NCBI GenBank assembly: GCA_964199315.1
Contig: OZ116703.1
Span: forward strand, 31,248,001 to 31,312,000
Length of the DNA stretch: 64,000 nucleotides
Source: Orbicella franksi
Taxonomy: Eukaryota
Direction: 5' to 3'
Under the pieces are notes generated by a model that was not told the DNA's origin, searched no databases, and saw only the letters and a program-made list of their open reading frames with translations. Positions within the stretch are counted from its first letter, which is position 1. The number at the start of each line of letters is the position of its first letter. Shown piece after piece: positions 3,446-43,700 of the stretch. The position numbers were made by a program, and so were the translations under genes.

Positions 3446-3600
3446 CTTTGTTGTTATCACGTGCTATGATAATGAGCCACTGTCATGAATGAATGACTGC
3501 ATGTTAGCGCGCCACGACGACGGTTTATTTTACTCTTTTGTTTTGGTTCAGAGACAGTCGTAGATTCGTTTCCTCGTGTTAAGAAGACACGAAAACGAAA

Positions 3601-9837: not shown

Positions 9838-9980
9838 CAGCCTTTTCCAGGCTCTCGGTCAGTGGGGACGGGGGGTTTGGTAAAGAACCTCCCCTCTTTC
9901 TCTACCAGACCCTGCTCGTTGCTCGTCGCCCGGCCGTTTTTTTCGATCGTCCCCACTGACTGAGAGCCTGGAACAGGCTA
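9838..9980. mobile_element. MITE with ~30-bp TIRs and 9-bp TSD (Mutator-like)
   Basis: AGCCTTTTCCAGGCTCTCGGTCAGTGGGGACG ... CGTCCCCACTGACTGAGAGCCTGGAACAGGCT; CATCCTGAT at 9829-9837 and 9981-9989. Confidence 0.75.
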
Positions 9981-11460: not shown

Positions 11461-13435
11461 TTATCCAGTTTCACAGGGCAGCATTTTCCAGATGAGCATT
11501 TGACTTGCCAATCTTCTGTTGATCTCAGCTAATGCCAGTGAGAGTTTCAAACGTCTTTCTGGCGAAGACAACACCTGCATAATGTGGTCAATCTTTCTCA
11601 CTCTAGCTTTAGCTTGGTTTTCTTTGGAGATTTGGTGTCCCTTTCGCTTGATGATGGGTTTATCCGAGAACATCCTCGATCTGTCTTGGACTGCTTTGGG
11701 ACTTTTTACGTTCTGATACAGGACTGGTTTTCTCAACTGCAAATAACGACAAAAGTAGAGTAATTCAGCCATTTTCAATTTAGCTTTGTCTTAATCTGTT
11801 AATTGCTAATTGGTTCATGAAATTCTTGCCACATTGTTTTAGCCAGTAAGAGTAAAGTTGTTATCTTGCTTAACCAATCAGGCGCGGAATCTTGACCTGC
11901 CGTGTTGAGTTGACAACCGCGATTTTCCCGCATTTTTACAGACATCCCGTTGTTTTTATAATGATCTAATTGGTTTACCGCGCTATGGATTTAATAGTCT
12001 TAATAATGGGCCTTTGATAAATGCTTACGGTTTTATGGTAGTCAAAAAAGTAGAAGAAAGAAACAGGTCGAACATCTGAACAGGTTAAGTTGACGAGTTT
12101 TAGTACTTTTATCATGGCACGACAAAGAGGTCTGGGAATAACTAATTATTCATTGCCAAATTAGTTCCAAATCTGTGCGAACCTGTTTGTTTATTTATGC
12201 CTTAAAACTCAAAATATGTGATAGTAAATCTTAAAAGAACGAGGGTGATTGAACCTGGGAAAGATCGAGAGGGATTCACATGTTTTGAGTGAATGGATGG
12301 AGGTTCTGGAATCGCACTTGTCATCGCAATTTCGGCGATGTGTCTTAGCTTTGAGTTATAAGATTTCAGCGCATTTCTCAGCTGTCACGATATTTTGCAG
12401 ATCTCATTCCTCGGCTGTCAGTAAAAAAACAAAAACAAAAACAAAAAACGCGCGTCCTGTCGCAGTTGACAGAAATTTTATCAAATTTCTCTGTATTGAT
12501 TAAACCAGATCCCCCAGCTAGTTTTGTGCAGCCTCTGTCTTTCATTCGTCCTCTCACCTTCTTAGCTGATGGATCGCTGTTCACTATGGCGCCATTTTGT
12601 TGTTTTTCTCGAAGAGTACTGAAGGACTGTCTTCTTGTAGTCCCCAGACGGTAACCTTGACAACGAGATAAGTGACATAAACATAAGCAAAAGAATGACG
12701 CGAAATGTGAAACTGTCACACAACGAGAACTAAGTTTATCTCACCCTCTCATCAAATTATCCAAGTTAATGAAATCACTGAGTGATTGAAAATTAAGAAA
12801 CAACTCTTCTTGTAAATGACATTGCGAAGTACTTGTCAACTCTTTTCGACGATTTCAACGATATTAATTTTCTAAATAATGTGAATATTCAAATAAGTTA
12901 AAAAACAAAAACAACAAAAAGGCAATTGCAACGATATTTCTGATACATGCGAGTGACAACTTGTATCAGTGATAAACGCTTCTTGCGGGGGAGGAGAAAA
13001 CAATAGCGAAGCCAACCCTCAAAAAAACGCTTCTTGCGGGGAATACAGAAACAAAGCCCCCCCCCCCCTCCCCACTTCCAAAAAAAAAAAAAAAATCAAA
13101 CGCACTCGTGCTTATCAGACTCGCTTTCCAGCGAATCCGTGCCAGATCCCGATTTTATTTCTTGGTGTTAGGGCGCTAGGCTATGTACAATGAAACCTGT
13201 CTTACCTGAAAACCGCTTCCCACCAATCCTTCGAGTTTCTGGTGAAAACACGTGCCCACAAGAGCAGGTACGACTTGAGGCCGCGACCTGTGTGAGAACA
13301 AGACGTTTTAAAACGGCTGCAAATTATGGGAGGACGGCTTATTTAGATAGCTTTTTTTCAGTATAGAATAAGTTCTCTATATCGGTACAAACCACGAATT
13401 AAAGATTGCTTAGCCATCACCTTTGTTGGTTCCAT
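11461..13435 (-). CDS. C16orf87: UPF0547/C16orf87-like small basic protein, spliced (13206-13287, 12558-12655, 11461-11736; candidate first coding exon 13421-13435, uncertain)
   Basis: VAASSRTCSCGHVF resembles VPVACKSCPCGYIF; C-terminal LSLALAEINRRLASQMLI resembles FSVALAEINRKIINQRLIL; canonical splice sites with phases 0/1/0. Confidence 0.78.
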
Positions 13436-16400
13436 TCCTGAAAACTGAATTTTAAAACGACAACGCAAGATAATCACAATTTGTTACACAGCGGGGCAAA
13501 CGTTCAGTTTCGTGCCATTTCGTGTCAAGTTTTGTTGTCTTTTGTGGGAGTGCAAACCGTTACTGGCGTGTGTGTTTTATGGAGACGATGAGCTCTTAGG
13601 GTTAGTAAGTGTCGGCTGACAACAAGGCTCTTCAGAATTTTGTAAATTGCCGAACACGCAATTAATAGACCCAGTTATGTCCTTATTGATCAGTTACACT
13701 TATTTGATTACTTGCATAAATTAAACCGTCGTATATGTTGCACATCAGTTAACTTTGTTACTTGGAATATAGAAGGATAAAGCCCCGTATGGAAAGCACA
13801 AGCAATCGATGTGTAAAGGTCGTAAGTTTTCTTATTTTCAAGTCAAGTTTTTTTGTTCCCAAAGCCATACGTAAGCCTACAGCAAAATGCGAAACGCTGT
13901 GCAGTTATCATATGCAATCAAGAACGTTCGCAACGTCGAGAAGAAAATAGACCATGCTTTACGGTTCTTTTTTAAGTGCAGAAAATGGATGCCTAGAAAA
14001 CATCTTGTAATTGTTCTGAGCGACTTTCGTTGACCCTAGGTTTGATCCTCTTTATAAAAAGGAATTATGATCGATGTGATAAGACTTCGTTTCTAGGTAT
14101 CTGAATTTTCTCCATATTTATTCCTGACAACAATCTTAGAAAAGCTAGGCCGGATTCAATGTGAAACGAATTTTATTTATGTTATGCACACTGGTACGTG
14201 GCTGTCCCCTTTTTTCGCCTAGTTTCTCAGTCGCGCGGTACCGCCGAATTGCAAGAACCCAAAACAGAAAAGGATTTACCACGCACAATACAGCTCGAGG
14301 ATAAGGCAGATTTAATTTGTACAAAAATTGTACAACGGACATAATGAAGCATGCTTCCTTTAAGCCCTTTTGTCATATTGAAAGGGATGTCTTCTCCGTG
14401 TATTTAGAAACACAACAGAGGGTACGTTTTACGAGGCCTCGGAAGGCAAGTGACATGAGATGCACTGCGTGATGGAGAAAGTTGGTGTCATTTATCGCAC
14501 TGGGTAATAGCGTTTTAAAACGGAGAGTCGAATAAAGTCGACCGAAATACAATCTTCTAAGAGTCACAGAAATAATTCAACAGAAAGAATGTGGTGTTGG
14601 TGATTTTAAGAGTTGTAGATAATAGATTCATTTACAAGATTTACATCAGGAACATTTCGTCACGGTGAAGTTGGTCCGAGGTCGATGGCTTACAAACAAG
14701 TCGCGGCTGCGAACACTCTGAAACTCAGGAATATTTTTCTTGAACTAGAGTATAAGTTTACGCAATTAGCACACTAACCTTCGAGCTACAAGCGATGCAG
14801 AGCTTCAGCATCTTGCCTCCTATCCCCGAAACAAGCCAAAACTTGTTTTGAAGCGAAGACGAGCGGCGAACGATTTTACGTAAACTACGTAAACACCGCT
14901 CGAAGACAGCTCGATCAGAGTTCGTTATTATTTGAGCGCCTTTTTGGCGTAATTCCAGAAATTGTTTTAATTAGGATTACAATGCGGTTTATTGTTTCGA
15001 CCGACAACTGTGCATTCGGAAAATATGTAAATTGCGTCGTACTTTTTTCGATTTTTTTCCCATGAATAATTTGCGACATATTTATGATTTTACAGTAAAA
15101 ATATAAAATGTGCTATTTGAAGACATCGTGGTCTCCCTTTAATTGTTTTAGCATGATTTCTATTCCTTGTTTTAAGCGCATGTTTTTGTAACCAAAATAA
15201 TCGTCCTCGTTGAAAACCCACTGCGTCACTTGTAAACTATAAATATGCATGACTCGCCCACACACTCCTGGCCGGTCAATCTTTTCGATCGTGCAGAGAA
15301 AGCTACTGTGCGGGGAATTGAGAGAGCCAAGTATCGTTTTAGTCCGCGGGGTCTAGTAGAGTTTTAGATACCTGAGCTACGAGGAGTTCGATGGAGGGGT
15401 GCTCGGCTGTGAAACTTAGCCGAAATTATGGGTGCTAATGGTCCTTCAAAAACCATGATTCTCGCAAAATTTTCGTTGAATTTCACGGGTCTCGCAGTCT
15501 CGTTTTTCAGCGGTTATGAGTGTCTCGCAGTCTTGATTTTACACAAAACTGTCTTTCAGTCTAGAGTTTTTCTCAAAGCTTAGAAAGTCTCAAAGTGTCG
15601 ATTTGTTTGCTTGCGTTTGTAACGTCTAAGAACCTGAAAGACTCGAGCTAGCATAAATCAAAACACTGTGAGATAATTTGTAATTTAGATTGAGGGCCAG
15701 TGGTTTATCAGTTTTTACTGTCATATGCTACCCTCGAAAAGTGAAGTTGTTACATTACTTGCTCACTTACGATGAAGCCGCGAAGAAGTCTAAATGTTTC
15801 GGGCTCGCAAATAAAAACGCGTAATCCACCCCCTCCCTCTTGGCAAAGTCTCGCATTTACCATTCGTCACAAACTAGTTGTGGTGAAGAAAAATAAATCA
15901 GATGAATTAAACAGGCCAACGAACGAGGAAACAGAAGAGAGGAGACAGGTGTCTTCACTGATCGACCAGCGGGGTTTTCTATTTGTCCTATCCCCCAACA
16001 AGGACACAACTTTCACCGTGCTCCATTGAGAGCCACATGAAGCTATCGGAGCCTAGTAAAAAACATTTAAAGTTTAATTCCCAGGAGCTGATTGTATAAT
16101 TGTCTTGCTTGAATAATACTCTGCACGAGGAAAAAATCCACATAGAGCCATCTAGAACTACAGAGTAATCTCTGTGAATCTAGTATCCTGCGTAAGCGTA
16201 GCGGTTCCCTTCCAGGCCAGTGCGAGGCGCTCGAACAAAACGACTTTGGAAAATATGCAGAGGTTCGCAGCGCGAAAGGGAACAAAAACTCTTTACCTAC
16301 ATCCCAAGGTTTCGTTCTCCTCTCGCAAACTTGGAAAAGAAACGCCGGCTTCGCAAGCTGCGAATACAGAAAATCAGAGTTTTCGTTTTTTATCTGGCGA

Positions 16401-23596: not shown

Positions 23597-23790
23597 TTAG
23601 TACTTTTTTTCTCTGGACACTCTTCTTGTTCGTACACGTTCCATGGCTTTCGCTTTGCTTTTGCTGCAAAACTTGCTGTGTTCCTCCTCATCTTGATGGC
23701 GACAATCTTCCCCACAGTACCCCTGCACGTTACATCTTTGGCACCAGTCATTCGCCACTTTGCCGCAAAAACAGAAATACTCGCATTTTT
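23597..23790 (-). CDS. Terminal exon: MYND-type zinc finger and basic C-terminus
   Basis: Acceptor acaccag phase 1; CFC-x7-CQRC-x4-YC-x3-C-x7-H-x3-C, then [13 protein letters not shown]. Not in the ORF track. Confidence 0.8.
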
Positions 23791-26700
23791 CTGGTGTAGT
23801 GAAATGAAAGACAGAGTTACTTCAAACCTAACATTACATCAAATCCTGTTTATAATTAGCCTATGGCTTCTCGTGTTATTAGTATTTCAATTGGACTTTT
23901 CCATAGTATAAGCCTTCAATTTCAAATTGATTTATCGACACTTCAAGTGAGTCCAGTGAGTCTCTACTTAATAAACTTCATAATAAATAACTGGATCATT
24001 GGATAATACAATTCAAGAGTTTTCATTGGCTTAACCATCATGGTAAATTTAACAGTTATAACATGCTCTACAAATATGGTAAACGTACGCGAAATTGTTT
24101 TTCGGCGTTTTTGTTTTTATTTTAGTTTAGCTTTCTATATTTTGGGGGCGTTTTTAATAAAGCAATTATTCTACTCGCGCTTACTGAATATGAGATGATT
24201 ATAGTCAACTCGCGCCTCGTTAACTATCTACCATCTCATATCCAACTCGTGTCTGTGGAATAATTGTTAATTAGATAACGATTATCCCTATTCAAAGAAC
24301 CTCGTTAAGTAACAAATAACCCTCACTTACGAAACCGACAATTTCTTGTAGTTAAGAGAGGATGAAGAGAGTTAGTACCCCATACAGGTCTTTTTGCTTA
24401 GGTAATCCCTTTTCAGTTATTTTTTAGATATTTTCCCCTGGTCTCCCGCGGATAACAGTACCACGCGTGTTGTGTGGATGTTTCCAGGGAAGAAGCAAAC
24501 GCGTGTGAGTCATTTGAGCTGTCCACGTGAGCAAAATGCGTGCCACAGGATCAGTTATTTCTCGACCCTCCTGGGTTTTTCAAAACGGAAATGAGGATCA
24601 CCTTGGGAATAAGGCGTACAAGGGGGGTAAATCTTTTACTTTTCACTCTACCCTTCATCTGAATGTTGCTCACAACAAATGTAAGTAGCTGTTCATTTTT
24701 GTAAGCGCATATTGAGTAATTAAGACACATGAATGGCTCACCTGCTCCATGGAACACTTTGACATAGATAGTCTTCTTGTAAACCCCGGAGACAATCAGT
24801 TGATATTCTGTTCGAGGGTCAATAATTTTAAACTTGCGCGATATAAACAGATATCTTGCTGAGCCCAGGTATCCAGGCAACGAGCGGTTGATGTCCTGCC
24901 GCAATTCGTTTAAGGTTCCGGATGGGTTGACCTTGACAACCCCTGCCATATGGGCGACGACCCCCAGCTCTGCATTGGGGCGAATAACCTTCACTTGCAT
25001 CTTTTGTTGCTTAGTCGAATCTTTGGGATAAAAGAGAAAAATAATTAAAAAAATCTTTATTGGGCTATGTAGTAAAGCCTGCGTACGAGCCTAGTAGCCT
25101 ATCAGGCCGGCGCCTACCTCCGGTTTCCTTGACATGAAGCGACCAGAAGTATTTCTACTCCCCCCTGGATGCGATGCTGGTCCATCGCGGGGTTATCCCA
25201 GCATTGAAGGGGTTATCCCCAGCATCCGGATTATTTTACCATTAGACATGATTAAGAAATTACTATCTCCACGGGTATTTGTAAGATAATTATCTTGATA
25301 ACGTTATTTAGAAATGATTTTACCCCTGGGGTATGAAGTGATGACGTTAACCCTCGGATGTGATTAAAGACTCACTTTACCCTTAGGTATTGATGAAGTT
25401 GTAATTTTACCTCTTGGATGTTTGATTTAGGAACGATTACGCTTCTCGGATAAGATAAAATTACGACTAGACTGCTTTTTTCTGTTTAAGGAATAGCTTT
25501 AACTTCTTGGCATGCGGTAGAAACATTCGTCTCAAAGGGAAGTACCTGTGAACAGCAAAACGCCAGGCATGTTTTGCATCTGATCAACGTCAAAAGATGA
25601 CGCCCTTCGACGCAACACAGCTTCTTCTCTTAGACTCGCGACTTCATCATAATCATCAAATCCATCTCGCAACATTTCAGTGTCCTCAGATGATTCGGCT
25701 GCGGAGTGGAGACGAGTTTGAGAGCCAGCCGCTGAAATAACAACTTTAGGAGTGCCCAAACGGGTCGTCGAGTCGTCGCCAGGATCACTCGGTTGTAAAC
25801 TGCCGGAAGAACTGGCGACTGGTGTCTGATTTCTGCTCGTGTTCGCCGAGGGATTCGGTGTGGTCCGTTTGGATGACGTGACGGGAAATGCAAGGACCGG
25901 CTTCGGTAGATCAGCTGAGTCTCTCTTCGAACGCTCTTGATTCTGTGAACAGAATGTCAGAAAAGTTGTAGCTAACTATTGAAAAACAAGTTTGATGGCA
26001 ACAGTCGTCAAACTGAAAACTGGAAATGAATGTAGCAGCCACTGCGTCCAGCGAAAAAACACACGGGCAAAAGGAGTCCCGAAATGTCTGCTCGTCAAAT
26101 TAATTGACTTGGAACTTTTTGTTATCCTGCGGAATTGCGCGGAAAATCTCCTAATACTGAAGTGCTTATTAACAATGCTGATATGCGATCTGCAGGTAAT
26201 CAAAATGGTAAAAAAGGGCAGTGCTGTTTTCTACTGAATGTTGTAGACCTAAAACCAAATCACAAAGGATACAGACTACCCGCTGAACTAATTAAAACGT
26301 AAAGCAAATACATGTAGCCGACAAAAAGCGCGAGAAAACGTGTACGAGTGAGCCACAATTGGTTTTGGTTTTACTTGTAATTGGATAACAAAGTGGCGCG
26401 AGTTCTTTTTAAGCCAATCGCTTTACGTGATAATGCAAAGCCAGAGCAAATGCCGATTACTTTCGACACTTAGAGAAAACCACTCTAAAAATTTTAACAG
26501 CTGCGACATTTGCTCTACCAAGTCACCAGTGTGTATCCTAATTTAACTTGGCATCATTAAAACGCAGTGTTACCTCAAACGCCGGTAGCTGTTCCTCTCT
26601 CTCTTCAAATGCTGGTTCCACGATTTCTGTAAACGCCAACGGAGTTGCATACCTTAATTGGCTTAGACTTCTTTGCGAGCCAGTAGAACTCTGAACGGAC

Positions 26701-29700
26701 CAGGCTTCACTCTTGCTCATCGTAGCATACTTGGCGTCTGCGCTTGGAAGTTCTTTTCCTTTCTCGTTGTCGCTGTAAACATCTGGGGTTTCTGGCGGTG
26801 TTGGGTTAATTTTGGCTTCTCTGTTTTTCCGGCACACGCAGTACAATGCGATAACAAAAATTAAAATAACGACAAACGCACCCACACAAGCAACAGCGAT
26901 GATGTAAACTGGCATGCGGTCTTCATCTTCTGGCACAGGTTCGACTTTCTTTGTTTCACCATCGACTTTCATGATTGGTAAGGTTGTTAGCGTTTCTCCA
27001 TTAAACTCGAACTTCAGCCCTTCTTTCACATCCTCCCATAATTTATCAACCGTGGCCTCCCGCTTCGATTCAGGCACAGTCATGTTGAATGAAGCCACAA
27101 TACTGCCTTTTCTTACTACACAGTCGCTTACTGTCGCCTCGGGGTACATCTCTGATAGCTTGATCTCACACTGACTTTGAAATTGCGCTTCTCTCCCTTT
27201 GACAAGCTCGTCATAGTCGCCTTGGAAAGTTATTTCCACAGGGAATATAACAAGCGGATCATTGCATTCTGCGGTGGACTCAGAGATTAGCAGTTTGCGC
27301 TGTGGTATGAAGCTTGGCTGATTTTTAACCCAGGTAGTAACAGATGCATTAGACACGAGATTGGAAGTGAGAAACATTGAAACGACATGTTTCATTCCAT
27401 CAAAAGGCAACTCTTGCAGGATGGAAACGCCCACATCAATATATTCCAGCTCCGATTCCGTGGCTGCAATAACGTATTTTCCGCCTTCGTAACTAGCTTT
27501 GATCAGACCATCTACGTATAAAGCCCCGTCCACGGTTAATTTCGTGCCTGCTGTAAAACTTGTCTGTTCAAATTGAGCAGCAAAGCGTGGCCCAGGGTTT
27601 GAAAACAGAAAGTAAACCTCGGTTTGCGGAGACGAGACCGCTGATCCATCTTTGTTCGCCAGTTTCACAGCGAATTCTAAGCTGCAACGATCCGTTGATT
27701 TTGGAATATGGTAATTAAGCTCTGTCACAAACCTTGCCTTTTCCAGATAAATAAGGGACAAGAAGATGGCGTCGTTATTCTCGATGGCCTCGTTCCAGGT
27801 AACATCCATCCGCGCTTTCATCTCTTCAGTGAATTGGGATTTCGAAGATGCAGAGATGTAACCACTAATGAAAGCGACGTCTATAATGTCAAACGCGCAG
27901 TCTAAGTTGATATCACCCAGATGCGTATCAGGACAAGGGGAAGCTACGTTTGTAGGTGGTATCGGTGACAGCTCTTTATTTACTGTCCTGAAAAATGCAA
28001 CATCGACTTGAGGAATACCGCTTCTCTTAGATGTAAAGGCAACTTCTCCTACATTTTCTGACAGGGCCTTAGATTCCATCAGCGGTCCGAAGATATTGAT
28101 TGAACTGCCAAGCACTGTGTATGGGAGGTCTGTAGTGACTGTATCTAGACTCAAATCGTTCGTGCCGAACTGAATCTCTACATGTACTGCCAAGATTCCA
28201 ACAGTGCCAGGGTTTACTCTGATCGCCATTTTCCAAGTATCCCCTTCACTTAGTGACGGAATAGCTGCTCCTTCTTTGCTTCCAACATCAATTTCGCCAA
28301 CGTTTGGCTCCAGGTTGCAGTAAACTGCAAAGTCTTTTGTTACGCTTGAGTTTCCAACAAGCGTGGCTGTTATGGTTACACGACTGCTGCTGTCTGCGAC
28401 CAGAGTCACTACACCAGAGGACGGATGGATTTTTGCAGTAGCAGGGTCGCTTGAGGTGAACCCAACCAAACCACCGTATCGGGTGAAGTTGTTGATAAGA
28501 TGGGTGGATCCATCCTCCATTTCCACCTCGGCAAACGGTGATGCAGTTGTTCCCGTAATACCGCTCAGTGTCGTGTTGACACCCTCCAAGCCAAACCGAA
28601 TAATCGCAACTGTATTTAGGACTGTTGAAGACAATGTTAGATCAACACTTGCTGAAAGACTACGAGCAAACTCTGCCTGCAATGATACCATTCCGCTCAA
28701 GCCGCTTCCTTCGATGGAGAAGAGATTACGCGGAGCGGGTCCAAATTCAAAAGTGCCTCCAACTAGCTGAGCATTTGTTAAAGCAAACGAAGTGTTAGCT
28801 GAAGTGGAAACGTCCACGGTTTGCCCATTTGTCAAACCAAGAAGAACTTTGAGTAAAACTCGCTGATAGTGTCCCGGGATAATTTGTTTGAGCTCAATAA
28901 CCTCTGAATCGTCGGGAATATCCGAATATGGAACAGCTTTGACGGCCAGGTTGCTGCTGCCCACCACAGTTACATTCACCTCGACCGAGTTGACGTTCGT
29001 GACGTGAACAAGGAGTTTGCCAATTCCAGCCAAACCCGCGTTGTTTGCTATGACGTAAGGTACGCCATTATTGACAGCACTGAAGAGGTTATCGGACTTC
29101 GACAAATCATCCAGTGTGTAACGGTTTCCATTCATGGTGATATCTACTTCAGTTCCATTCTCGTACACCAGGATTATCTCCAATGTAGACCTATCTGCGA
29201 TGCCAGCCAGACCTGCTGGATTGATTGGCGAGGCAATGAATGATTGGATCAAACGCGCCTTGGCGGTGTACATTCCACTGTCGTCTATGTTAAGTACCCG
29301 TATCTCGAGGTTGGTAGTAATTGTTCTTCTGTTGCTACTGACCGGGCTGTTATCGGTAACTGTAACTTCCAAGTTGTGCTGATTAATTGTTTCAAAATCC
29401 AACGCCTTTGCCAACGTGATGACACCTGGTAAAGATTGTAATGAAACAATTGTGGCAATCATATTTTTTATTAACAATGCACTCGGCATTCCAGAAGTCT
29501 GGTCCATTAATAAAAGTTTTGCACCCGAAAGCGAAGCCGAATTTCGCTTCCCAAATCTTACGTTATTTGACCAGTTTGAAAAACTTTCACTGAGTATAGA
29601 TCAAGCTCAAGACACATTGATTGTGGACACAAGTCCTCGGTACTATGGATAAAATCTTGAAAAATACAAAATGCTAAGATTAGTCAAGAGTTTAGCTCGC

Positions 29701-31729
29701 TTTTAAGGTAAATTATCTTGTAACCTCTAACTTTTCAAATTACAGGGCAAAATCATGAGCAATAAATTTTCAGATGACAGCTGGGTTAAGCATGACGGTA
29801 AAAGTGCCTCTTTCAGACACGACAATGAACCGGCAATCTCGGCAGAGATTAGGACGCATAGGACGTTTCCCTATTACGTCATGCTGACGTTATAAAATTT
29901 GAATTAACTGCGATGCTGGCGGTGCTTGTCGCTTGGATAATAAAAGTGATTTCCCCAATTTTACAATCTTCAGTGAAGCTGCATATGACGGAATTGCTGA
30001 CTATTTGCCTATTTTACCTTGTTTATTACCACCTACCTGTGACGTGGTCGATGGCAAACGTTCCCAGGCTGTTGCCGTTTGTAATGGAGTACGTCAGAAC
30101 GCCATCATCTCCGTAATCATCGTCGGTAGCATTGACGTCAAAAATCACTGTCGATATACTGGTGTTCTCACTCAATTCTACGACTTGGTTATCAGCATGC
30201 TGCAGGGCTGGAGTAAATTCGTTGACACTCTGTACTGTGATAGCCAAGGGCACTGAATTGTTGAGCTCTACTGGCGATCCCTTGTCCTTTACAAATATGA
30301 CCAATTGGTACGAACGGTCAGCGGTATGGTTTTGCGTCTCCAGATCCAGGCTCTTGGCGACGCGTATGATACCTTGGTTAGATTCGATGCTGAAAAGACC
30401 CCGTTCATTGCCGCTTGCTATGGAATACACAAGTTCCCCATTGGATTCAAAATCAGGATCTGTCGCTGTTACAGTGATCACTTCATCGCCAATGGCAATG
30501 TCTTCGTCCACGAGCTGAGAGTAAAAGCTCTTAGCAAAGCTCGGAGCATTGTCGTTTACATCCATCAAGCTGAGGAGGACAGTGGTGGTGCCGGACTTAC
30601 GGTTGCCTGTCGCACGATCTTTAGCTGTGATTTCTAGGCTATAGGTTGGCTGCGCCTCTCGATCCAAGGAGGCATCCGTGGTGATGTTCCCTGACACAGC
30701 GTCTATGAAGAATCTCAGGTCGTCGTTTCCGGCGGTGATACTGTATCTTATTTCACCGTCTGAACCGAAGTCGGCATCTGTAGCGCGTGCCTGGTAAATG
30801 AAGCTTCCAACAACAATGTCTTCACTGACTGTGACTGATACGGCCGAGGAAGCAAAACTTGGCGCGAACTCGTTCTTAGAAATCACGTGTATAACGAGTG
30901 TCGTGTTCGAGTGCAGCAAGGGACTCCCAGTATCCTGTGCCATCACTGTTAACATATGTGTCCATGTGGATAGCTCTCTTGTGTCCATGTCGAGGGAGGC
31001 TGGCGAACAAAAGCAAAGTTAGGTGTTTACAATCGATTCTAAGGTTGAATAAAGTACACAGAGAGTCCTTCTCGTTATTGTTTCACCGCCACCTATCAAC
31101 TCTGGTAATGATGAACAAATGACGGAGTTGAAAAACGCATCTTTTTATTAGGTACGCAAAAGCAATTCAATCGTAGTCGTAGGTAAAGTCTGGACACGAG
31201 TCAAGTGGCTCATCAGGCCGGAGCTTATCCCGGTTTCAGTAGCATGAAGTGACCGGGAGTATTTCTACTCCCCCCTGGATGGGATGTTAGTCTATCGCAG
31301 GGTTACCCCCAGTATTAAATTCGTCGTTACCCATTTATACACCTGGGTGGATAGAGGCACTGTGAGAGTAAAGTGTCTTGCCCAAGGACACAACACAATG
31401 TCCCCGGCCAGGGCTCGAACCCGGACAACTCGCCCCGGAATCGAACGCACTAACCATGAGGCCACCGCGCCTCCCACGTAGACAGGGAAAAATGAAGTTC
31501 ATTAGCCTTATCTCGAGGATAACTGACATGATAAGATAATGCTGCCTGAAGCCTCTGAAACTCTTTCATAATTCATCAAGCTTAAACAAAGGAAATCATG
31601 ACCGTAAAGGTGTTTGGATATCTGATCTCGAAATTCGTCAAACATACTCCGCTACGTGTCGTATTTTCGACTCTCTTCTCGGTGTTTGAAAATGTGGTCA
31701 GAAACGGTCTTTCGTGTTTGATATATTAC

Positions 31730-31775
<46 letters not shown>

Positions 31776-34700
31776 CCCTTTTTCTTACCGTTAATTGTGA
31801 GTTCCCCGGTAGAAGAGTTTAGACTCCAAAACTCACTGCTGTAATTACTGGAAATTATTGAATATGAAACGAGTCCATTCAAACCATCGTCGGGATCTGG
31901 AGCAAAGAACGTGAACACAGTGGACTCAACCGCTGCGTCCTCGTCAATATCCACTTCGTAAAGAGGTTCAGAGAATGTAGGCGCGTTATCATTCAAGTCC
32001 AAAACAGACACGTACACGGTGAATATCGCGAACGCCACGTTTCCCGTGTCATCGTTATCACGAGCGTGAATCACTAGGGTGTAGGATGAGCAGTTTTCGT
32101 AGTCGAGCGAGGACATGAGTCTCAGTTCTCCGGTGGACGCGTTGATGGCAAACATGCCTTCATCGTTACCTGTAAACACACAAAAAGTAATGTTTCAGTT
32201 TACCGGTTGTTTAAGCAGTTTACAACATCTTGATCAACTCTTACTTGAAGACGAGAGAATATACCAGTGTAAACGCATGGCAAACTGTAGCTGAAATATC
32301 GTTGATCCGCTTTAAGCAGAGCCTGAAGATACGGAGTTGCAGCTGTTTGTAGCCAATGAACATTGTTCGAACGCTTGCTATAGCTTAAAGCAGTCTTTCT
32401 AACAAACAGTCTGCTGCTGCTAGGAAATTCCGGCACTAATAACCTTTTAAGCTTGAACCACATGAGATTTTAAGATTGAAACTGACGGTAGTTCGATTAT
32501 AATTGTAAGCTGATTTAATATAACACAGCTGTCTGTAAATCTAAAACAGCGTTCGATTAACGTGAGTGGGTAATAATCTAAGTCACTATCGCTGTAATAT
32601 TTAACATCTAGTCCGTATACAATTAACTGATATTGATATCACCAGGTTATAACCAAGTCTATGGTAGTGCTTGATTGACACGCACCTGAACTAATGACAA
32701 ACGACACCCGTCCCTGCTCCCCATAATCCTGGTCTGTAGCATTGACTTGAACTACCAGCACTCCGTCGCCAACTGCGGCGTTTTCAGCAAAGCTGAAGTT
32801 AAACGAAGAGTCATGCTGAAGCTGCGGAGTAAACTCATTAACTGCTGTAATGCTAATGTTGAGCGTTACACTTGTGTTAAGGCTCTGTGGGACCCCAAGG
32901 TCTTCAACAAAGATGACTAAAGAATGGTCGAAGTCGGGTCTTGGTTCTTGATCAAGATCGTACGAAGCGTTTACTTTCACCTCCCCTGTCGAGTTGTTGA
33001 TAGTAAATAGTCCTGCGTCATTCCCGCTCTTTATGGAATAACGAAATTCACTATTCAAGCCCTCATCCGGGTCATTAGCTTGAAGCGTTATGATGACGTC
33101 TCCAATAGCAGCATCCTCTGGAACGGTAGCGACCATTGAAGGGGTGTTAAATGAAGGAGCATTGTCGTTGATATCGGAAATGGTAACTTCAACCTCCCCG
33201 TCTGTAAAACGCACTTTTTCTGGAACCGCGCCGTCGAACGCGCGTACGGTCAACGTGAACACGGCAGTGGTTTCACGGTCAAGCTCTCCAGCCGTTGTTA
33301 TCTCACCCGATGACGCGTTGATATAGAACTTGTTCCCAGTATTCCCGGTCACGATGGAGTATGAAACATCACCTTGAGAACCAGAGTCATTGTCAGTTGC
33401 CATCACTGTGGCAACGGATTGACCAACAGGAGCGTCCTCTGAGATGGTCGCGTTGTACAAGCCATTAGAAGGGTCAAACACAGGCGAGTAGTCGTTGACG
33501 TATCGAACTTCAAAAGGTTGCGAGTGAACCTATAAAACCAAACGGGCACAAAGTAAGGAGCAGAGATTCACTTTAGTAATAATGCAACTCTGATGTGGTA
33601 CAATCTTTCTGCTTTGCATCCCAGTATTACACTATAAAACCGGATAGACGAATATATCAGAGAGTATTTTGTTCCAGATGGGGATAAGACGTGTCATCTT
33701 AAAAGGGAGATCATCATCTAAACATCAACAAAAGCTAAAAAATTTTCCCCTTAAAATAATCACAACGGACAACAACTACCTTGGCGCTGTAATATCATTT
33801 TTCCAGGTGATGAAATTGAATTTCGTTTCAGTCCAATCTACCGAACTACTATATTATTTCGGATGTTGTAAATACAACCGCTGATACTGTTTTCATAATC
33901 CTAACTTGTTATTACGAACATATTTTCGAGTTACCGAGAAGCCTATTTTTGAGTAACTAACTTGATTGTTATGTGTCCTTACAATTACAGAGCTACATAC
34001 CACGTGACCATAGTTAGACTCGAAGACGAGTTGATAACCAACACCGTAGTAAGATATTGACAAGTTTGTAAACTCCACTCTCTCGTCTTCAACCGTCTCG
34101 TTCAGCACTCCACTCAAGGTTCCATTTAAAGCTGAAGGTTTCAGTGAAGAGGCAATTGACCAATCACCTTTGAGAGGGTGTCCACGCATGCGCGTTCCCA
34201 AGTCTCGTACCTCCACTACTGGAGGTACTCCGAAGATTTCCGACTGGTTGGCTCTGTCTGGTTGTGTTATGACTTCGAGGTAGAACTGTCGCGCAGTTAC
34301 ATTGAATGTCTCGGATGTCACGGACAAACTTGAGTAGGAAGAGGAAGGTTCTGTGATGACAATAAATTCCATCTGATGCCCTTGAGCCACGTCATAGAAA
34401 TTCAAGTCTTGAAATTCTACACGCCCCGAGGTTTGTACTGCAAACAAAGTGGTGCCGTTTACCACAGAATTACTTCCACCGACCATGGTAGCGTTTATAA
34501 ACCAGGATCTACCTCTCCAACCGATGTTATCGACTAAAGAATCTGGGAAGGCATTCCTTATTTCCACTATCGGCTGGCTGCCACAGACCACCGTGTCATT
34601 GCAATCACCCGGTTGTTGAACCAGTTTTAGATAAAGCACTCTTTCGGAAACATTAAATGCGGACGAGTTACCACTGAAGACGTACCTTGAAGGCGGATCA

Positions 34701-37700
34701 GTCATTGCCTCCAATGCAAGGACATAGTTCTCACCGGATATGTCTACGCTGAGGTTTGTAAACTGAGCGACTCCTCTGACAAACTCTACTTGGGTAGTTC
34801 CGTTAAGGTGTCCATCGTTTTCCGCTGGATTGGCAAGAGATGCTGTAAAAAGCCACCGGCGTCCTTTCCAGCCCGTGTTGTTAACAATTTCACCGTTAGC
34901 GGCATCTCGAACTTCAATCCTCGGCTGTTGTCCGAAGCTAACAGTTTCATTCGCGTCGTTGGGTTGATCGGTTACTCTGAAGTACATAATCCTTTCTTTG
35001 ACTTCAAATGGCTGAGAAGTAGCGTTAAAATGGGACGCTAATGGTTTGCTAACGTAAAAGAGCAACTCGTAATCAGTTGCATTGTGCGTGATGCTCAGAT
35101 CGGTAAAATTCGCCCAGCCGTTCTCTAACGTGACATTCACGCTGCCTTCTAGTAACGCAAGTGAGTCTCCAGACCCGTTCTTGATGACTGCCGTGACAGT
35201 CCAGTTGGTAAGGGAACCGTGTCCCAGGGTTGTCACCAGAGTGCCATCAATGTCAATCAGTTTAAGCCTTGGCTGTGACGTGAAGGGTACGGTCTCGTTA
35301 GCTCCGCTTGGCTCAGTCACTAACTCCAGTCTGGCGGGAATAAGGAAGTTGAACACATTACTGGGTGCGTTAGCCTCCTGCTCGGCCTGAACCTCGTCAT
35401 ACCGACTTGTAGAGTTGTCCGTTACGTTAGGCTGAACTGTAAGAAGACAGAAAAAAAACGCAAAATCATGATTGAGGGAGTGTCCCTATATGGGAGGTTT
35501 TAATACTTTAATATTGAGTTTTCTGATCGTCGAGAAGAAAACCATTCGAGGCATTACTTACCAGTCTCGTTAGTTGCTCTGACGCCACCGGTTGGATCAA
35601 CCGGAGGAGGAATTGGGTCCGACATTTGAAGTGATAAGATTTCTACCCCGGCTGTCTGAGCGACAGCTCCCGTCTGTACCTTCTCTACAAATGTATCAGC
35701 AATTTCGCTAAGCTCGTCAAATGATGTTGTTTCGTTGACACCTGCAGTCAACAAAAGATAACGCATAACGCGGTAAGTATATTGATACCACACACAGGGA
35801 AATAAGTTAGTTCTTTTCGGAACCTAAAAGTCAAAAAGCCAGGTGATTAACTATAGTACAGTATCTGTGGCACAAACCGTCGCCGAGTATTGCCACACCC
35901 TCCTAGACTAGGTGCAACTCCATCACAAATTCCACCCCCCCCCCCCCTTTCACCCCGCTGTATTTGTGCGGGTTACTACAGGAATTTTTCAGTATTTTGT
36001 AACAAGAACTAACGAAAAAAAGTCATGGCGTTTCGACCTCTCTGAAGCCGTTTCAAGGGCGAGCGAAAATTACAAAAGTAGCATAAATGTGTTTTTAACA
36101 GTAAAAATTAGTTAAAATTTCACAAACGGTGGAATGCAATGAAATATGTAAAATAAGTGAAAAAATATTTACGAAGTTAAAAAGGGACCTAAAATAATGA
36201 GACAATGAAACAATAAAACAATACCAATGAGATTAAAGAACTGATCTAAACAAATAATTTAGCGCGAATTGAATCACACTGTTTGTTTAGTGTTCGTTTG
36301 AGTTCTTTGATGAAAAACATTTCGAAATAATGACAACACCTTTAATATTCTCGTGTTGTGAGAGACTCTGTTAGAGTAAGTGTCTTGTGCAAGATCATGA
36401 CACAATAACCGCGACCAGCGTAAAACAAAAGAGAAATCCCACTTCCATACCTGTGTAGTTGGAAGATGAAGAGCCGTTTGCAGCTAGAGGAGGATCAGCA
36501 ATCTCAATTTGGACAATCGCCACATCGTCAGATGAGCGTCGCCTTCGTCTACTATTCTCGCTGACAATATCTACTACTCTGATAAGCGACTTATCAATAC
36601 CGAGCAGGTCAGCCAGATTATTGACCAGGTTCTTTGTGAAGAAATCATCGATGGAGACCGCTCTCATACCAAGTTGTACCTGCAAGGAACATAATGATGT
36701 TGTTACACGGCTAATACGGTTTTAAGACTAATGTGTTAACTTTTCAGCTCTAATCACAGGTTTATTTATTTATTTATTTTATTTATGGTTAATTTAGTAC
36801 AGAGCGGTTTTCAATTGAGTGTCGTTAAACCAAAGCAAAGTAATCACTCTAGCTAATGTTAAAGGACGCAGGTAATCCAATGAACCAATCAAAACTCGTA
36901 ATAAATACATTTAGCTGACGTAAAGCGCGGGAAAACTTGTGCCAGCGAGTTGCGATTGGTTTTGTGTTTGAGTCCTGATTGAACGAAAAATTGGCGCGAG
37001 CTTTTTACGCTAATCGTGTGGCGTATTGGCGCAAAGCTGATTATTTCTTTACACTCGTTTAAAAACTGCACTTATTTTACTCGGAGGTGTCTGTAAACGA
37101 CTAATTACCTGGATAACGGGCACTACTCGTATTTCCACAGGGTCTGAACCGCGCAGTACGACAAACAAGGTGGCTCGCTCGCGATCAAAATAATTGACAC
37201 CGCCACTACTGGACAGCGGTGGCTCAAAGTAGTCGTCGGGTGCGCCCGGAGGTATGGGAAGTAAAGTGAAGTCTGATCCCTGGAATTCCGCATTTGTTGG
37301 AAAGATGAATATGTCTGAAAGTCAAGAATTGATGTTAGTGCATTGGTTATTTGATTTTTATAGACTGCTATAAAGAGAACATTACTTGAAATTTTGTGAC
37401 ATTTCTGTTGGTTTTTCTGCGTATGCCTAAGAAAATCTCGAGCGGCGCATTGGCCTCATCGTTAGTGCACTCGAACGGTCCGGGTTCGAGTCCTGGCCGG
37501 GGACATTGTGTGTTGTGTTCTTGGTCAAGACACTGTACTCTCACTGTGCTTCTTCTCCACCCAGGTGTATAAATGGGTACCGCGAACTTATTGCTGAGGG
37601 TAACCTTGCGATGGACTAGCATCCCATCCAAGGGGGAGTAGAAATACTCCTAGAAGCTTCATGCTACAGAAACCGGGATAACCTCCGGCCTGATGGGCTA

Positions 37701-40700
37701 CTTTGCCCGTATGCAGACTTTACCTAAGAAAATCTCGGATAAATACTAAGGACGATAAAGCTTACCGTTTTTATACACATCTTGCCTCTGTGGTCTTTGG
37801 TAGAAGATTCCAACACGAATCGAATCTGTGGGGTCGCTGTTTAACAAGTGCAACCTTAGTTTCTGTGGCTCGTTGCTCGTGAAATACAGAGAATAATTCG
37901 TTCCAGTCGCCACGATTCCGTAAAACGTCGAAATGCGTTCTTGACAAGTGTAACCCAAACACCAGCCGTGATCCTGAGGGCCGTTCAGCAGGTTGACGTA
38001 ACCATCTGCGATCAGCGCCACCGGAGACAATCGCCGTGTTTCGGTGTCATCATCCAGACTCTCGATAACTAACATTCTGTAATCTATTGAGCTACATTGG
38101 TACGCGTTCCAGTCAGCATCCCATGAGCAATGGCTTTGATCAGGTGTTCCACGAACGATGCCCTTATTAGGAGCGACAACAGATATGTTGAGTCGGGTAC
38201 CATCCACGGCAGTTGTAGCAGGTTTGGGGATACGATAGTCGCCTAGACCACATAAGGAATAAAGGATACTTAAGCGTCAGATAAGAATTTGAAAATTAAA
38301 GTTCAAGGTGATGAGGGCATTGCAGAATAAAAATATAAATTTACAGAACGTCTATCTTAGACCCGACTTAAACGTTGCTGCATGCCACGCAACTCTACGC
38401 CACAGTCCGCAGTCTCCGACGCGATGTTTTCTTTTTCGTGTAAGTCAACCCTACAACTCGCTTGTTACTATCCCGCAGAACACGAAAAATGTCGTAAGTT
38501 TTTGAGACATGACTGAACCCTGCGGAAATTGTAACCTTAGGCAATGTTGTATGTTAAAAATTTTATGCGATTTTTGCACGACACAAGTTTTTCTTTTATG
38601 TATAAGTCAAGCCTACAACTTGCTTGCTACAAGCGCGTACGACACGAAAAATGTCGTAAGTTATTGAAAATCAACTAAATCCTGCAAACTTTAAACTCAA
38701 GCAATGTTGTATGCTAACAATTTTATGCGAGTTTTGGAGGACACGAAACGACAAAGTTTTCCCGTCTAATTGTAAATCGTCCCTCATCGTAATATTTAAG
38801 CAGCATATCGTACCCAGTCCGTATCGTTTGTTTCCATCCCACTGGTACTCGGCCTTGGAGATGACTGTTCCCCCCACAGAGCCTGTAAATGAGCCATCAA
38901 GGTCCCGGATGAGCTGCTGTCTTCTTGCGTCACAGTCCATGTCAACACAATCTGACGGGTTTATCCACTGAGTCGTCGGTTGCTGAAAAAGCAGTCTGGA
39001 TACTTGGTCGACGGAATCGAAATGCAGGCCTACAACGAGATGAATCAGTTAGTGTCAGTCAGTCAATTACTCTGCCTCGTTTATTGTCAAGTAGGGAAGA
39101 GAAAACCTAAACGCAAAATCTCCAGCAAGAAGCCGAAAAAGAGATAGAGAGGATGAAACCCGATTGAAAGTGTAAATAAAATGGTATATTCTTAACAAAT
39201 CTAGTCCAGTACTGGCCCTATCTCTGTCACGCAACGCTAGGGAGAGAGAGGGAGCCTCTCTTCCTAGGGTTGCGTGACAAAGAGAGGGCCAGAACTGGCC
39301 TATAACAAACCTCGCACGTCCACTGGATGGAGAATGTCTCCCACCCATGAATTAGTCATTATCGCTCGATGTTTATTCCCGCATTTTTCCTGAAATCCGG
39401 AAAACGTCACCTCGTGAAAGAGCGTGTAGCCATTTATTGCTGGATAACTCATCGGGCTTTCCCACGACATCTTTGGACCGCCAGCTGGCGATGATTGGAA
39501 CGACGGAATTGTGATACCAATTTTACCGCCTGTTGAAGCAAAATAAAATGGTGAAAGAAGTAAAACATTTAGTTTTTAGTTCACGTTATTTGAAACTAAA
39601 AGCATTACCCTGGGATATCTAGCTAAACATAATCCAAGCTTCGCAAAATGATTCTACCTTAGCAGCAAAACTGAAGTCAGACTCTTAAATTTACGGACGG
39701 TTTTAAAATTGAGGAATGTACTATAGCAGAAAAGACGAGCTATTCTTTGCTTGACGAAATGCCGAAATTCAGAGCATGATCTATTCAAACTTAAAATAAC
39801 GGTTCTTTAATGATCTGCCTGTCTGGAGCAGTGGTTTTTTATCCACTGAATACTGAGCGATTTATCTGGTGTACAGCGCTATCCAGCCTTCCAACAACTG
39901 GGGCCTACTTGAAATCAAAGATCACCGGAATACATCCATTTGATACATGCCTAACAAACGGATTCTGTTGAGAGAAATCACCTCTACACCACGTATGCGC
40001 GAATGACTACAAACATTTCAAAGGGAAATTTTCCTCTACTCGCTCCGATTGTTAAATAGGCAATGAAATCGAAGGGGCTAACATATAGCTTGTACAGGCG
40101 CCGGAACGTGAAACCATCTCTTGAAAGAAAATAATATTGAACCATTGCTTTACATTTAAATATGTATTCAAAACCGAGCATTGATGTTTTAACACAAGCA
40201 AGAACGTGACTAGAGCACACAAACGGGTTTTTTTCTCTACCTCTGGAGTAATTTCGTCGCTATTTAAGTCGGTGAACAACAAAACGAATCTACAACAGAA
40301 ATTCGCTATTACTTTAAAGGTAAAACTATCTTTTAACTCTTGGGCGCAAAATGTCTTCATAACCTTTCTTAAAAAAATGCACATGTTCAAGGTTACATTT
40401 CTGGAGCTACATTGCACGGTCTACATAAAAATGAACATTTCAACTTGAGTGTACCTCCTGGGGCCGTCTTCGCCCCAATTCCTCCGTACGGTTCTCTGGC
40501 ATATGGTATAATGCTGTCTTCTGCGCAGTCGTAGTTAGGACTTGTGCCAACGATCAGCGAGTGTCTCAGAATGAAATATTTGTCAGCAGTCCTGTGTGAT
40601 TTAGCAGGTGGCCCCCACACATTGGGAAACATTCCCACGGTGTTATCCACGGCAATAACATGGTCTACGACAACACTGGACTCACAGTATGTGAAGATGC

Positions 40701-43700
40701 CGTAGTCGTAATTTTTCCAAATGAGGAAGCCGTATAGCATAGCACATCCTGGAAGACCCTCCACGTAATGCAAATGTACTCCGTGCCAAGCACCGTGGAC
40801 TTCATTGCCAGTGGAAATTCCCAGAGGGTAATCTGTGCATTTCTCGCCATCAAGCTTGTATCCAAACCGTTCGCTTCCAGCTACTGTATTATTGATCAAA
40901 ATGACATCGAATGCTTCGTGTACTTCGATGGCTCCAGGCCAGTGAATGTTGGACTTCTCTTGTCTCCCGTCGTAGGTGTGGATAGAAATGGAATACACTG
41001 CCAAGTTTCGTAACACGCTGTTACATTTTCCGGCAACTCGAATTGAAGGGCCGACCGTGTGGTGTACAACGTTGTCCTCCACAGTCAGATTGTCGGTTCC
41101 AAACACACCGATACCAGTGTTGAAACAATCGTGGAAGGAACTGCCACGGACGTAAGACGTGTTGCCTTCAACCACACCAGTATTGAGGAAAGCTAAGGCG
41201 AATCTGACGAGTGAAAAAAATGGCATCATTTATGATACAAAGACGTTTAACACACCATTATTTATTTGGTTCTAAAACCACGCTTTACGTTAAAGGAGAA
41301 AGAGTGTTATTCCGTGGATCATGCTTAAACCGCGATTTACTTTGGTACGATGTTAAAAGAATGTAATTACACATCTCGATAATTTTGGGGACAGTTATTT
41401 CATGGTACTGAGTTTAAGTGAAACAATTATTCATCTCGACAAATGTTGGTCATTGAGCGCGTGTCTTACCTGGGGTCGTAATCATCCGTATAGCCTTCCT
41501 GACCGCAACGATTAAACTCCACATTCTCAATTCTGGCGCTACCCTTGTACTCTATCCCACCAGATACTGTTCGACCAATCAGAACACGACATCCAAACGA
41601 CTGGTCCCAGGCTCTAGAGGGATTATCCGCACCTTCTATAACGATATTTCTGGTCAGCAGTCCCACTTCTGCCGCCATGGTGTATGACCAGTTGCCAACC
41701 GTGTGTGTTTGTACGGTGTGTTTGTACTGAAGGCACGCATTCAGTGTCAAGTTTCGTTTGTCTTGTGAAATGGCTACTATAAAGAACTTTTCAGTCTGTT
41801 CAGGCTCAACTGTAGTTGAAGTAAGCACAATCTCATCGCCAAATCTCCAATCCACGGGTTCAGCAAGTATAAGTGAACAATCTCCAGCTTCGGCGGTAAC
41901 AGCCAATCGAGTCCAATAGACCTGCTTTGGTTTCCCGTGCAGCCATAGGAACCCAAACACTCCAAGTGCCTTGCTTCCCATGTTCACGTCTCGCAAGGGC
42001 AGCTCCTCACTGTAATGATCACCTCGAAGGCTTAATAGGAAGTTTGAAAGATAAGGCTCGTCCGGCCATCCCACGATCAAACCGCCGCTGACGAAGACAA
42101 TTGAAGCATTCAACACCATGGTCTCACCATCCCTGTCCTCGATCTCCAATGTGCCGTACACAAACAACTGGTTCAAATATGGCAGCCGAGTATCGGCTAC
42201 CATGTACCAATCTGTCATTATCATGACGTCACTTCCGTTGCCAGGTAATCTTCTTCCATAACCACCATACAGGGGCTCAGTGCCTTCCCAGTCATCAACA
42301 CTGGACCAGCGACGGTAGACCTCCGGTCTTCCTTGCGGGGGAGGGGGTGGCACCGGGGTGATGCAGTCTTCATAATAACAGAGGTAAACGTCCAGATCGA
42401 CAGAACGTGGCTCAACATTGTTATTTTTTGTCAGAGTCGCATTCTTGCCAGACGCGATGTACGTAAACACCTTTGTCTCGTTAACAAAACTCCAGTTTCC
42501 GTGAAGAGCATCACGGGATGGCACGACTTCCGTCATGTTCTGGTAAGCGCCAGTAGTGGCAAAGTGATCTGGTGTTTGCATAAATTGGTGGGATATCCAG
42601 ACATAATCGCCTTCCCTCATATCATAGAACTTGCCAGTGTAGCTGATGTTAGTTATGTGGGATGTGTCTTCGAATGTCATGTTGTATATTTCTCCCCGAA
42701 TCAAAAGCATCACCCAACCCATCGGATGAGTCGCGCACTTGATGCAGAAAGGGACCTTGTCGATTCCGTGCTGGTTCGTCAACAAAATGTATTTGGCCTG
42801 CAAGGATACTGGGGCGGCGTTGTTCAAGGCAAATCTCGTGAATTGCACACTAGAATCACAGACACTTCCATTATGAGGCCCGTAGCTGTCCTGGACGGAC
42901 GGAGTACATTTCTCGGGCGGTAGATTCTCATTGTCAGGCACGACGCTTCCATTTGCATAACCAGTGAGACTTCCATCCAGATCGAGTATGACTGCCTCGT
43001 GACTCCATCTAAAAGCGGTCCGGCGTGGAGAGTTGACGAAATGGTTTCGCAAAGTGTGTGAAGTCCAGCCGCCTCTCTTTTTAAACTCTGCACATTGTGC
43101 ACAAGCGCTGTAAGCGGTGCAGCCTTCCCGGTCGAAGTTCACGAAGGTGACATTTTCGACGACAAGCTTAGAGAACTGTGGCAGTCTTATACCGGAAGTC
43201 GTGCAAAGTGTGTTGCTGCTTACTTTCAGTTCCAATCCCTCGCTCACTTGGCTGTGACCGACGATAAGTGCGTCTTTAATCCTAGGACCACCCCTTGGGA
43301 CGTCTGCTTCGTTAGCAAAAACGTACTCAATACCAGCAATGTCATTATCCAGCATCTTGAAGTTGTGCATTTGAACTGCACCAACTTTGACGGCTTCTGC
43401 CCCTCGCATATTGTTATAGGCGATAAATGAGCCAAACACCGCGGGCTCAGCGATACAATCGTCGCATCCCCCTCCCCGCTGGGGGTGGTAAACGGGAAAT
43501 ATCCACAATCCATAGCGGCCGAACGAATGCGCAGAGTTGTTGAAAAATTCAAGCATGAATACATTCCTGGGACAGTAGTCGGATCGAAACGACGGGCCAT
43601 CAGGGCGGTCGAACATTTGATACCAGAAACCAAAATGGCTGCCCCCTGCAGCGGCGTTGTGACGCACGGTGTTGTTAGCGTTTGTTACCCAGAAGGTAGC

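Follow-up and report, generated by a model that had tools for sequence, protein, structure and literature searches.

Cohesin and dockerin modules are not confined to the cellulosome: non-cellulosomal ones are known from each of the three domains of life (PMC9012536, with reference to Peer 2009, Bayer 1999 and Haimovitz 2008), and tandem modules of this kind belong to the subject of the review by Peer et al. (2009), as it is cited in PMC6030884 and PMC9012536. For the animal lineage, coherin-type cadherins and TMEM132 have been connected with the cohesin fold (Nichols et al., 2012; Sanchez-Pulido and Ponting, 2017, PMC6030884), and dockerins are undetectable in vertebrates (PMC6030884). We here report on a cohesin directly followed by a dockerin, which is encoded on the minus strand of a 64,000-nt stretch from the coral Orbicella franksi (assembly GCA_964199315.1, contig OZ116703.1, positions 31,248,001 to 31,312,000; this whole stretch is called the window, and positions are counted from its first letter). 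Coherins have been known from choanoflagellates and sponges (PMC8164589, PMC6030884), whereas the present carrier is cnidarian. What is new in this locus is a cnidarian, membrane-proximal cohesin-dockerin cassette, with a predicted cysteine staple, in a fibrocystin-cadherin receptor.

An earlier note, made from the letters of this stretch, had proposed a cohesin-like sandwich directly followed by a duplicated dockerin in the ectodomain of an animal protein, and we have confirmed both the tandem, at almost the same coordinates, and its location in the ectodomain of a coral membrane protein. When the literature was searched for dockerins in connection with cadherins, corals or metazoa, no description of an animal dockerin beside a cohesin was found. 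Likewise, in what PMC6030884 and PMC8164589 tell of coherins and TMEM132 no dockerin is described beside the cohesin, whereas the coral receptor has one. Pfam assignments in the databases already show Cohesin and Dockerin_1 together on giant cadherins.

Evidence for the cohesin and the dockerin

The didomain lies within a 989-codon open reading frame (ORF; 26538..29507, minus strand), in which the span given by the earlier note corresponds to residues about 404-588. It is predicted structure and transitive homology, not a family profile, by which the cohesin half is recognized, and on these grounds we regard it as genuine. A model of residues 390-600, built with AlphaFold2 on a 22-sequence alignment, has a predicted local distance difference test (pLDDT) score of 90.6 and a predicted template modelling (pTM) score of 0.86, with the cohesin blocks at pLDDT 91-98. 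When compared with solved structures by Foldseek and VIA-align, this model shows the elongated nine-stranded beta-sandwich of the cohesin type. The 31 top Foldseek matches in the PDB were all cohesins (E-values of 6.5e-5 to 1e-3), and VIA-align gave Z scores of 10-11.8 and root-mean-square deviations (rmsd) of 2.2-2.8 over 106-113 residues against 2vo8, 5nrk, 1anu, 1ohz_A (Z 10.8) and the Archaeoglobus fulgidus cohesin 2xdh (Z 10.3), so that type I, II and III as well as archaeal cohesins are represented among the targets. The transitive step leads through a giant cadherin, P0046, to which hhalign connects the didomain with a probability of 97.8% (E 7.5e-13) and whose residues 770-835 are a Pfam-significant Cohesin (PF00963, E 4.7e-10). 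Feature neighbours of the didomain in the ESM Atlas are Cohesin/Dockerin clusters at 0.96, and a shape search agrees. Searching with the Cohesin profile, which the earlier note had recommended, did not succeed in the window: PF00963 gave no match to the domain even at E 10, let alone a gathering-level score, and it reached E 0.0011 in one of 15 orthologues. A profile of the cohesin part found a single match among PDB sequences, which was dismissed as chance.

The dockerin half is genuine too, and the second profile recommended in the earlier note, Pfam Dockerin_1 (PF00404), contributes to its identification. On the window's domain alone this profile scores 22.4 bits (E 1.4e-4), slightly short of the gathering cut-off of 22.9; it matches 13 of the 15 orthologues (best E 2.1e-7) and is precomputed on one orthologue and several giant relatives. 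A profile made from the orthologous segments found 15 matches among PDB sequences, 14 of which are dockerins, and the single sequence can be aligned end to end with the Xyn10B dockerin of Clostridium thermocellum (1ohz_B and 2ccl_B). An exhaustive phmmer search with the segment found proteins that are built of 8-10 Pfam-significant dockerins (E 7e-21 to 9e-9). The dockerin part of the model (model residues 139-206) has the three-helix fold, with predicted helices at model residues 152-163, 172-178 and 188-198, and contains two tandem 12-residue EF-hand-like loops, each with a helix segment; VIA-align superposes it on 8x39_A, a double dockerin of C. thermocellum, at Z 9.1 and rmsd 2.0 over 66 residues with 18% identity. 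The earlier note had made its proposal depend on profile or structural matches to these folds, and structural matches have been found for both. A plain EF-hand pair was also considered for the segment and is ruled out, as no EF-hand family matched the window's ORF. As a separate observation, the strongest non-cadherin matches to the coral dockerin are proteins with 8-10 tandem Dockerin_1 domains, some of which also have FG-GAP-like repeats (P0032, P0048, P0054 and P0073).

We counted the conservation of individual positions over 22 relatives, down to 24% identity. The ligand pattern D/N/D/D/D that the earlier note had read in loop 1, and the largely intact loop 2, are borne out by these counts, since the ligand positions are kept in 19-22 of the 22 relatives. 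In loop 1 the figures are 21 for D1 and 22 for each of N/D3, D5, D/N9 and D12; in loop 2 they are 21 for D1, 21 for N/D/T3, 22 for N/S5, 19 for E/D9 and 21 for D12. From such conserved ligand positions, both dockerin loops would be expected to bind calcium. The two cysteines to which attention had been drawn (in the motifs SPCP and LDCA) are equally stable, Cys525 of the linker being present in 21/22 relatives and Cys537, at position 6 of loop 1, in 22/22; with their spacing of 12 residues, they probably form a disulfide that staples the linker to the first calcium loop. Position 6 of a dockerin loop is usually Gly. A Cys at this position has also been found in the giant cadherin relatives.

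The recognition positions 10-11 deserve a separate mention. The pair found there in C. thermocellum is Ser-Thr, whereas the coral dockerin has Ile-Ile in repeat 1 and Asn-Asn in repeat 2. The earlier note had pointed out this difference between the repeats, and it recurs among the relatives, in which Ile10 of repeat 1 is kept in 21/22 and positions 10-11 of repeat 2 are variable. The asymmetry fits a single binding mode, as the note had supposed, and a dual binding mode is unlikely for the coral repeats, in contrast to dockerins of the 1ohz type.

The exon that encodes the didomain is transcribed and spliced. RNA contigs from three coral (meta)transcriptome runs place its junctions at 30035 to 29423 (cut +2) and 26574 to 25942, with ends CT..AC, equal to GT..AG on the minus strand, and direct reading of the exon borders gives CAG followed by GT at the acceptor and GAG followed by GTAAC at the donor. 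These contigs join the exon to a cadherin exon upstream (30035-31000) and to a Ser/Pro-rich minus-strand exon downstream (25546-25942). Because the exon is spliced at 26574 to 25942, the in-frame stop at 26538 falls within an intron and does not end the protein. One RNA contig has a length of 15,972 nt and extends 14.9 kb upstream of the exon's junction; of the raw reads of RNA run X24, none aligned. The three runs containing the exon are labelled "coral metagenome", and this label, the G+C content of the window (42%), the canonical introns and the animal-type domains together point to the coral host. The whole 64-kb window includes 896 N.

The receptor and its relatives

The exon appears to be part of a very large fibrocystin-like plus cadherin receptor. 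Cadherin repeats are encoded in the exons just upstream (30026-30988 and 32639-33481), which RNA contigs join to the didomain exon. Minus-strand exons still further upstream, at 40393-51181, have Pfam matches to TIG repeats (E 1.6e-97), G8 (E 2.2e-55) and a CEMIP-type beta-helix (E 5.8e-50), and judged by these families the region, which is encoded on the strand that also carries the cadherins, is fibrocystin/PKHD1L1-like. The long RNA contig reaching upstream suggests that the TIG/G8 part and the cadherins belong to one transcript. The order along the minus-strand gene region is TIG, G8 and beta-helix, cadherins, Ig-like, cohesin, dockerin, Ig-like, SEA-like, membrane helix and cytoplasmic tail, and the ectodomain can be estimated, from the upstream exons and the same contig, at several thousand residues. 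No Pfam family could be assigned to an ORF of 487 codons on the minus strand (33893-35356), situated after the beta-helix part and before the cadherins; it might represent a new domain or a linker within this receptor. The last cadherin and the cohesin are separated by about 320 residues (28320-29275, minus strand) of repeated, beta-rich sequence, which has no Pfam match and ends Big_2/Ig-like (e.g. VTITATL...).

On the membrane side of the dockerin, the next domain has a structural similarity of the generic Ig-like kind (Z about 5.5). It is followed by a domain that we describe as SEA-like, with a predicted order strand-helix-strand-strand-helix-strand and an invariant G801-S802-I803 (27099-27107) in a beta-hairpin; in model 2 the GS comes after strand 205-212 and before strand 216-225. 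Among the Swiss-Prot AlphaFold structures this segment best matches Uromodulin-like 1 (residues 711-934, E 2.9e-4), which lends weak support to the fold, and Pfam SEA did not match it. The last residue of the dockerin is 595 and the first of the membrane helix is 865, which puts the didomain about 270 residues from the membrane. Table 1 lists these features.

Table 1. Positions of the didomain, its exon and the membrane-proximal features in the window
Feature	Position	Strand	Remarks
Large coding exon, about 950 codons	26574..29425	-	RNA-contig junctions, splice sites read directly; content in order: last cadherin half-repeat, Ig-like domains, cohesin, dockerin, Ig-like, SEA-like, membrane helix, start of cytoplasmic tail
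Cohesin	27954..28304	-	ORF residues 402-518, model residues 13-129
Pro-rich linker TNVASPCPD	27927..27953	-	Nine residues, carries Cys525; pLDDT dips to 68
Dockerin, type I-like	27723..27926	-	ORF residues 528-595; two repeats of calcium loop plus helix, short middle helix
Predicted calcium-binding loop 1	27879..27914	-	Residues 532-543; putative ligands D/N/D/D/D at 1, 3, 5, 9, 12; Cys537 is position 6
Predicted calcium-binding loop 2	27771..27806	-	Residues 568-579; D/T/N/E/D at 1, 3, 5, 9, 12
Ig-like beta-sandwich after dockerin	27282..27737	-	ORF residues 591-742; Cys608 and Cys748 invariant; AlphaFold2 model 2, pLDDT 84
Putative SEA-like domain	26946..27254	-	ORF residues 752-854; from predicted fold and motif
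Transmembrane helix	26832..26915	-	Hydrophobic stretch read directly; basic stop-transfer CRKNRE after it; kept in orthologues

Other parts of the region gave some side observations. Further minus-strand ORFs, at about 24551-25000 and at 23597-23758, have the look of a compact domain and of a Cys/His-rich finger (WCQRC...CGEDC...H...C). An intronic segment at 31200-31480 has an RNA contig depth of 9,500-16,000, compared with 20-330 for the exons; it has no Rfam match and, by its look, is a dispersed repeat with a tRNA-like end, and the depth is probably added up over many copies.

The close orthologues represent this exon in other assemblies, with identities of 39-98%. Cadherin exons are located upstream at both orthologous loci that were looked up, and a relative with 29% identity has one there as well; in two diverged genomes, too, the cassette is preceded by cadherin exons. 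Next in similarity come single ORFs of 2.6-7.9 thousand residues, which contain numerous cadherin repeats as well as Ig_TMEM132 domains; precomputed Cohesin and/or Dockerin_1 assignments exist for many of them. In one of these, P0035, Dockerin_1 (3785-3841) comes after a cohesin-like stretch (3588-3643), and by BLASTP each half can be aligned to the window. The giant cadherins contain 4-8 cohesin-like stretches and few dockerins. Among prokaryotic proteins, cohesin-dockerin tandems at the C-terminus are frequent, and they can be aligned across both domains (AlphaFold DB cluster matches); one ESM Atlas representative spans both domains (141 residues, rmsd 4.1, query 2-203). We conclude that the cassette is old, shared with prokaryotes and carried in the animal lineage by giant cadherins of the coherin type; an ancient transfer is plausible, but today the cassette is an inherited component of the giant cadherins of holozoans. 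We reject a recent horizontal transfer or a contamination on account of the GT-AG introns that are used in polyA RNA, the identity range of the orthologues, the cadherin exons upstream in two other genomes and the finding that the nearest non-orthologues are giant cadherins.

The coral cassette can now be compared with the described systems. With the non-cellulosomal tandems of bacteria and archaea it shares the order of cohesin then dockerin in one chain, usually with one of each, and both are extracellular and unrelated to cellulose. The coral case differs in that the carrier is a spliced giant membrane receptor of an animal, that the cassette is internal instead of C-terminal, that the orientation in the model is another one (rmsd about 20) and that loop position 6 is an invariant Cys, predicted to be paired with the linker Cys. 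With the coherin, lefftyrin and hedgling cadherins and TMEM132 it has in common that a cohesin homologue is built into adhesion proteins of cadherin type in the animal lineage. As in coherins, one protein here combines a cohesin with cadherin repeats; the coherin family itself has been defined on choanoflagellates and sponges. The coral receptor departs from the order of TMEM132 (conserved region, cohesin, three BIG/Ig, membrane helix), in that Ig-like domains precede the cohesin and a dockerin, one Ig-like domain and the SEA-like domain come after it; the Pfam families of TMEM132 had no match to the window's ORF. Compared with the type I complex of C. thermocellum (1ohz/2ccl), both folds match and both dockerins have two 12-residue calcium loops with a helix after each, whereas the coral system is without multi-cohesin scaffoldin or enzymes and the sequence identity is 8-15%.

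How the cassette may work

The reading that we favour, tentatively and at slightly less than even confidence, is a self-associated cohesin-dockerin joint or latch in the membrane-proximal stalk, stabilised by calcium and a disulfide. The dockerin would be a two-site Ca2+ module that is permanently loaded in sea water, and the Cys525-Cys537 disulfide would hold its loop 1 on the linker. The dockerin would pack on its own neighbouring cohesin to form a compact unit directly above the SEA-like domain, and this unit would serve as a joint or latch of high mechanical strength, with no collecting of other proteins. We favour this reading because the fold prediction gives a fixed arrangement: the pTM of 0.86 for the didomain, compared with 0.58 for the following two-domain piece (pLDDT 84) that was modelled alike, predicts that cohesin and dockerin are not beads on a string. 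The features that look like an interface are among the conserved ones, namely the Ile at position 10 of repeat 1, the Pro/Cys linker and the two cysteines, and retention of the tandem order from prokaryotes to giant cadherins suggests that both domains work as a unit. The self-association, the surface that it uses and any mechanical role are what we infer from these data.

Several points weigh against a self-associated joint. In the model, the dockerin may occupy the canonical 8-3-6-5 face of its cohesin or simply lie next to it, and both binding surfaces of a rigid didomain could still be available for contacts with other molecules. The models of prokaryotic tandems align at rmsd about 20, so that the orientation is not obviously a common one, and the alignment behind the coral model is shallow (22 sequences). 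In P0035 the cassette is internal with more cadherins after it, which means that a juxtamembrane role is not general. In addition, binding between separate modules has been reported for the non-cellulosomal cohesins and dockerins of archaea (Haimovitz 2008, as cited in PMC9012536).

This last report also speaks for the second-ranked reading, which we consider possible, that a receptor uses its dockerin to bind the cohesin of an adjacent copy or of a paralogous receptor. Cohesin-dockerin modules are by nature intermolecular binders, the archaeal non-cellulosomal ones being a reported case (PMC9012536); the asymmetric repeats with a conserved repeat 1 fit one defined binding mode, and the giant cadherins, having more cohesin-like stretches than dockerins, could receive a dockerin on their spare cohesins. 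Against it stand the fixed intrachain arrangement in the AlphaFold2 model and the single cohesin per molecule here, and for an animal cohesin-dockerin pair the idea is drawn by analogy. If it does occur, such pairing would be mostly sideways on the same membrane, given the membrane-proximal site, and would produce calcium-dependent rows or clusters. The earlier note had thought of chains or a mesh between molecules; a cell-to-cell mesh is disfavoured by the anatomy, as a site about 270 residues from the membrane, beneath a very long ectodomain, favours cis or intramolecular contacts, and it is the lateral form which keeps its place.

A rather unlikely reading is that of a structural relic, in which the folds and calcium sites are kept solely as rigid, stable spacers of the stalk and no cohesin-dockerin binding takes place. 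Many extracellular calcium-binding modules do act purely as stiffeners, and the coral cohesin has drifted beneath Pfam detection and is, at about 117 residues, shorter than the 135-170 of the PDB targets. Against this, the tandem has been kept together over very distant lineages, and almost all relatives keep the hydrophobic residue at the canonical recognition position.

An animal scaffoldin or capture device, as the earlier note had imagined it, whose cohesin collects dockerin-tagged secreted proteins of the coral, its symbionts or bacteria, draws on the cellulosome analogy alone and on the presence in databases of dockerin-rich bacterial proteins resembling the coral dockerin, and it is very improbable, because the profile search in all six frames of the 64-kb window found one cohesin and one dockerin, no multi-cohesin scaffoldin and no evident enzyme partners, because the lone cohesin adjoins its own dockerin near the membrane beneath the long ectodomain, and because we know of no dockerin-tagged coral enzymes and saw none in the analysis.

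Meaning for animal cohesins

Cohesin-dockerin pairs are among the strongest non-covalent protein contacts measured. Their rupture forces exceed 120 pN, and the meaning of the animal cohesin has been unclear because vertebrates lack a detectable dockerin (PMC6030884). In the literature covered here, discussion of animals has so far been limited to the cohesin half, in coherins and TMEM132, whereas the coral has both halves side by side. Its pair is intact, conserved and expressed, with a predicted disulfide of the extracellular type, and it is located in a receptor built for adhesion or force sensing. Thus, the coral receptor provides a concrete system for asking what the partner of the animal cohesin is, whether the modules were acquired from bacteria before animals arose and whether early animals employed them in adhesion or mechanosensing. 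A natural eukaryotic dockerin with a predicted disulfide staple is also of use to protein engineering.

A more far-reaching possibility, which we regard as quite unlikely at present, is that an animal mechanoreceptor uses the pair as a latch or lateral zipper that bears force. The giant ectodomain (TIG/G8, beta-helix, cadherins) would then be under tension, which an ultrastable, calcium-dependent contact of cohesin and dockerin would pass on to the SEA-like domain; shedding would be possible at the conserved G-S site of this domain, so that the tail is released for signalling. PKHD1L1 and the tip-link cadherins are hair-bundle proteins of vertebrates. Mutations of TMEM132 have been linked to hearing loss (PMC6030884). 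If the mechanoreceptor reading is true, the coral receptor would represent the first animal use of the high-force bond of the cellulosome, and it would tie together modules of the vertebrate hair-bundle proteins.

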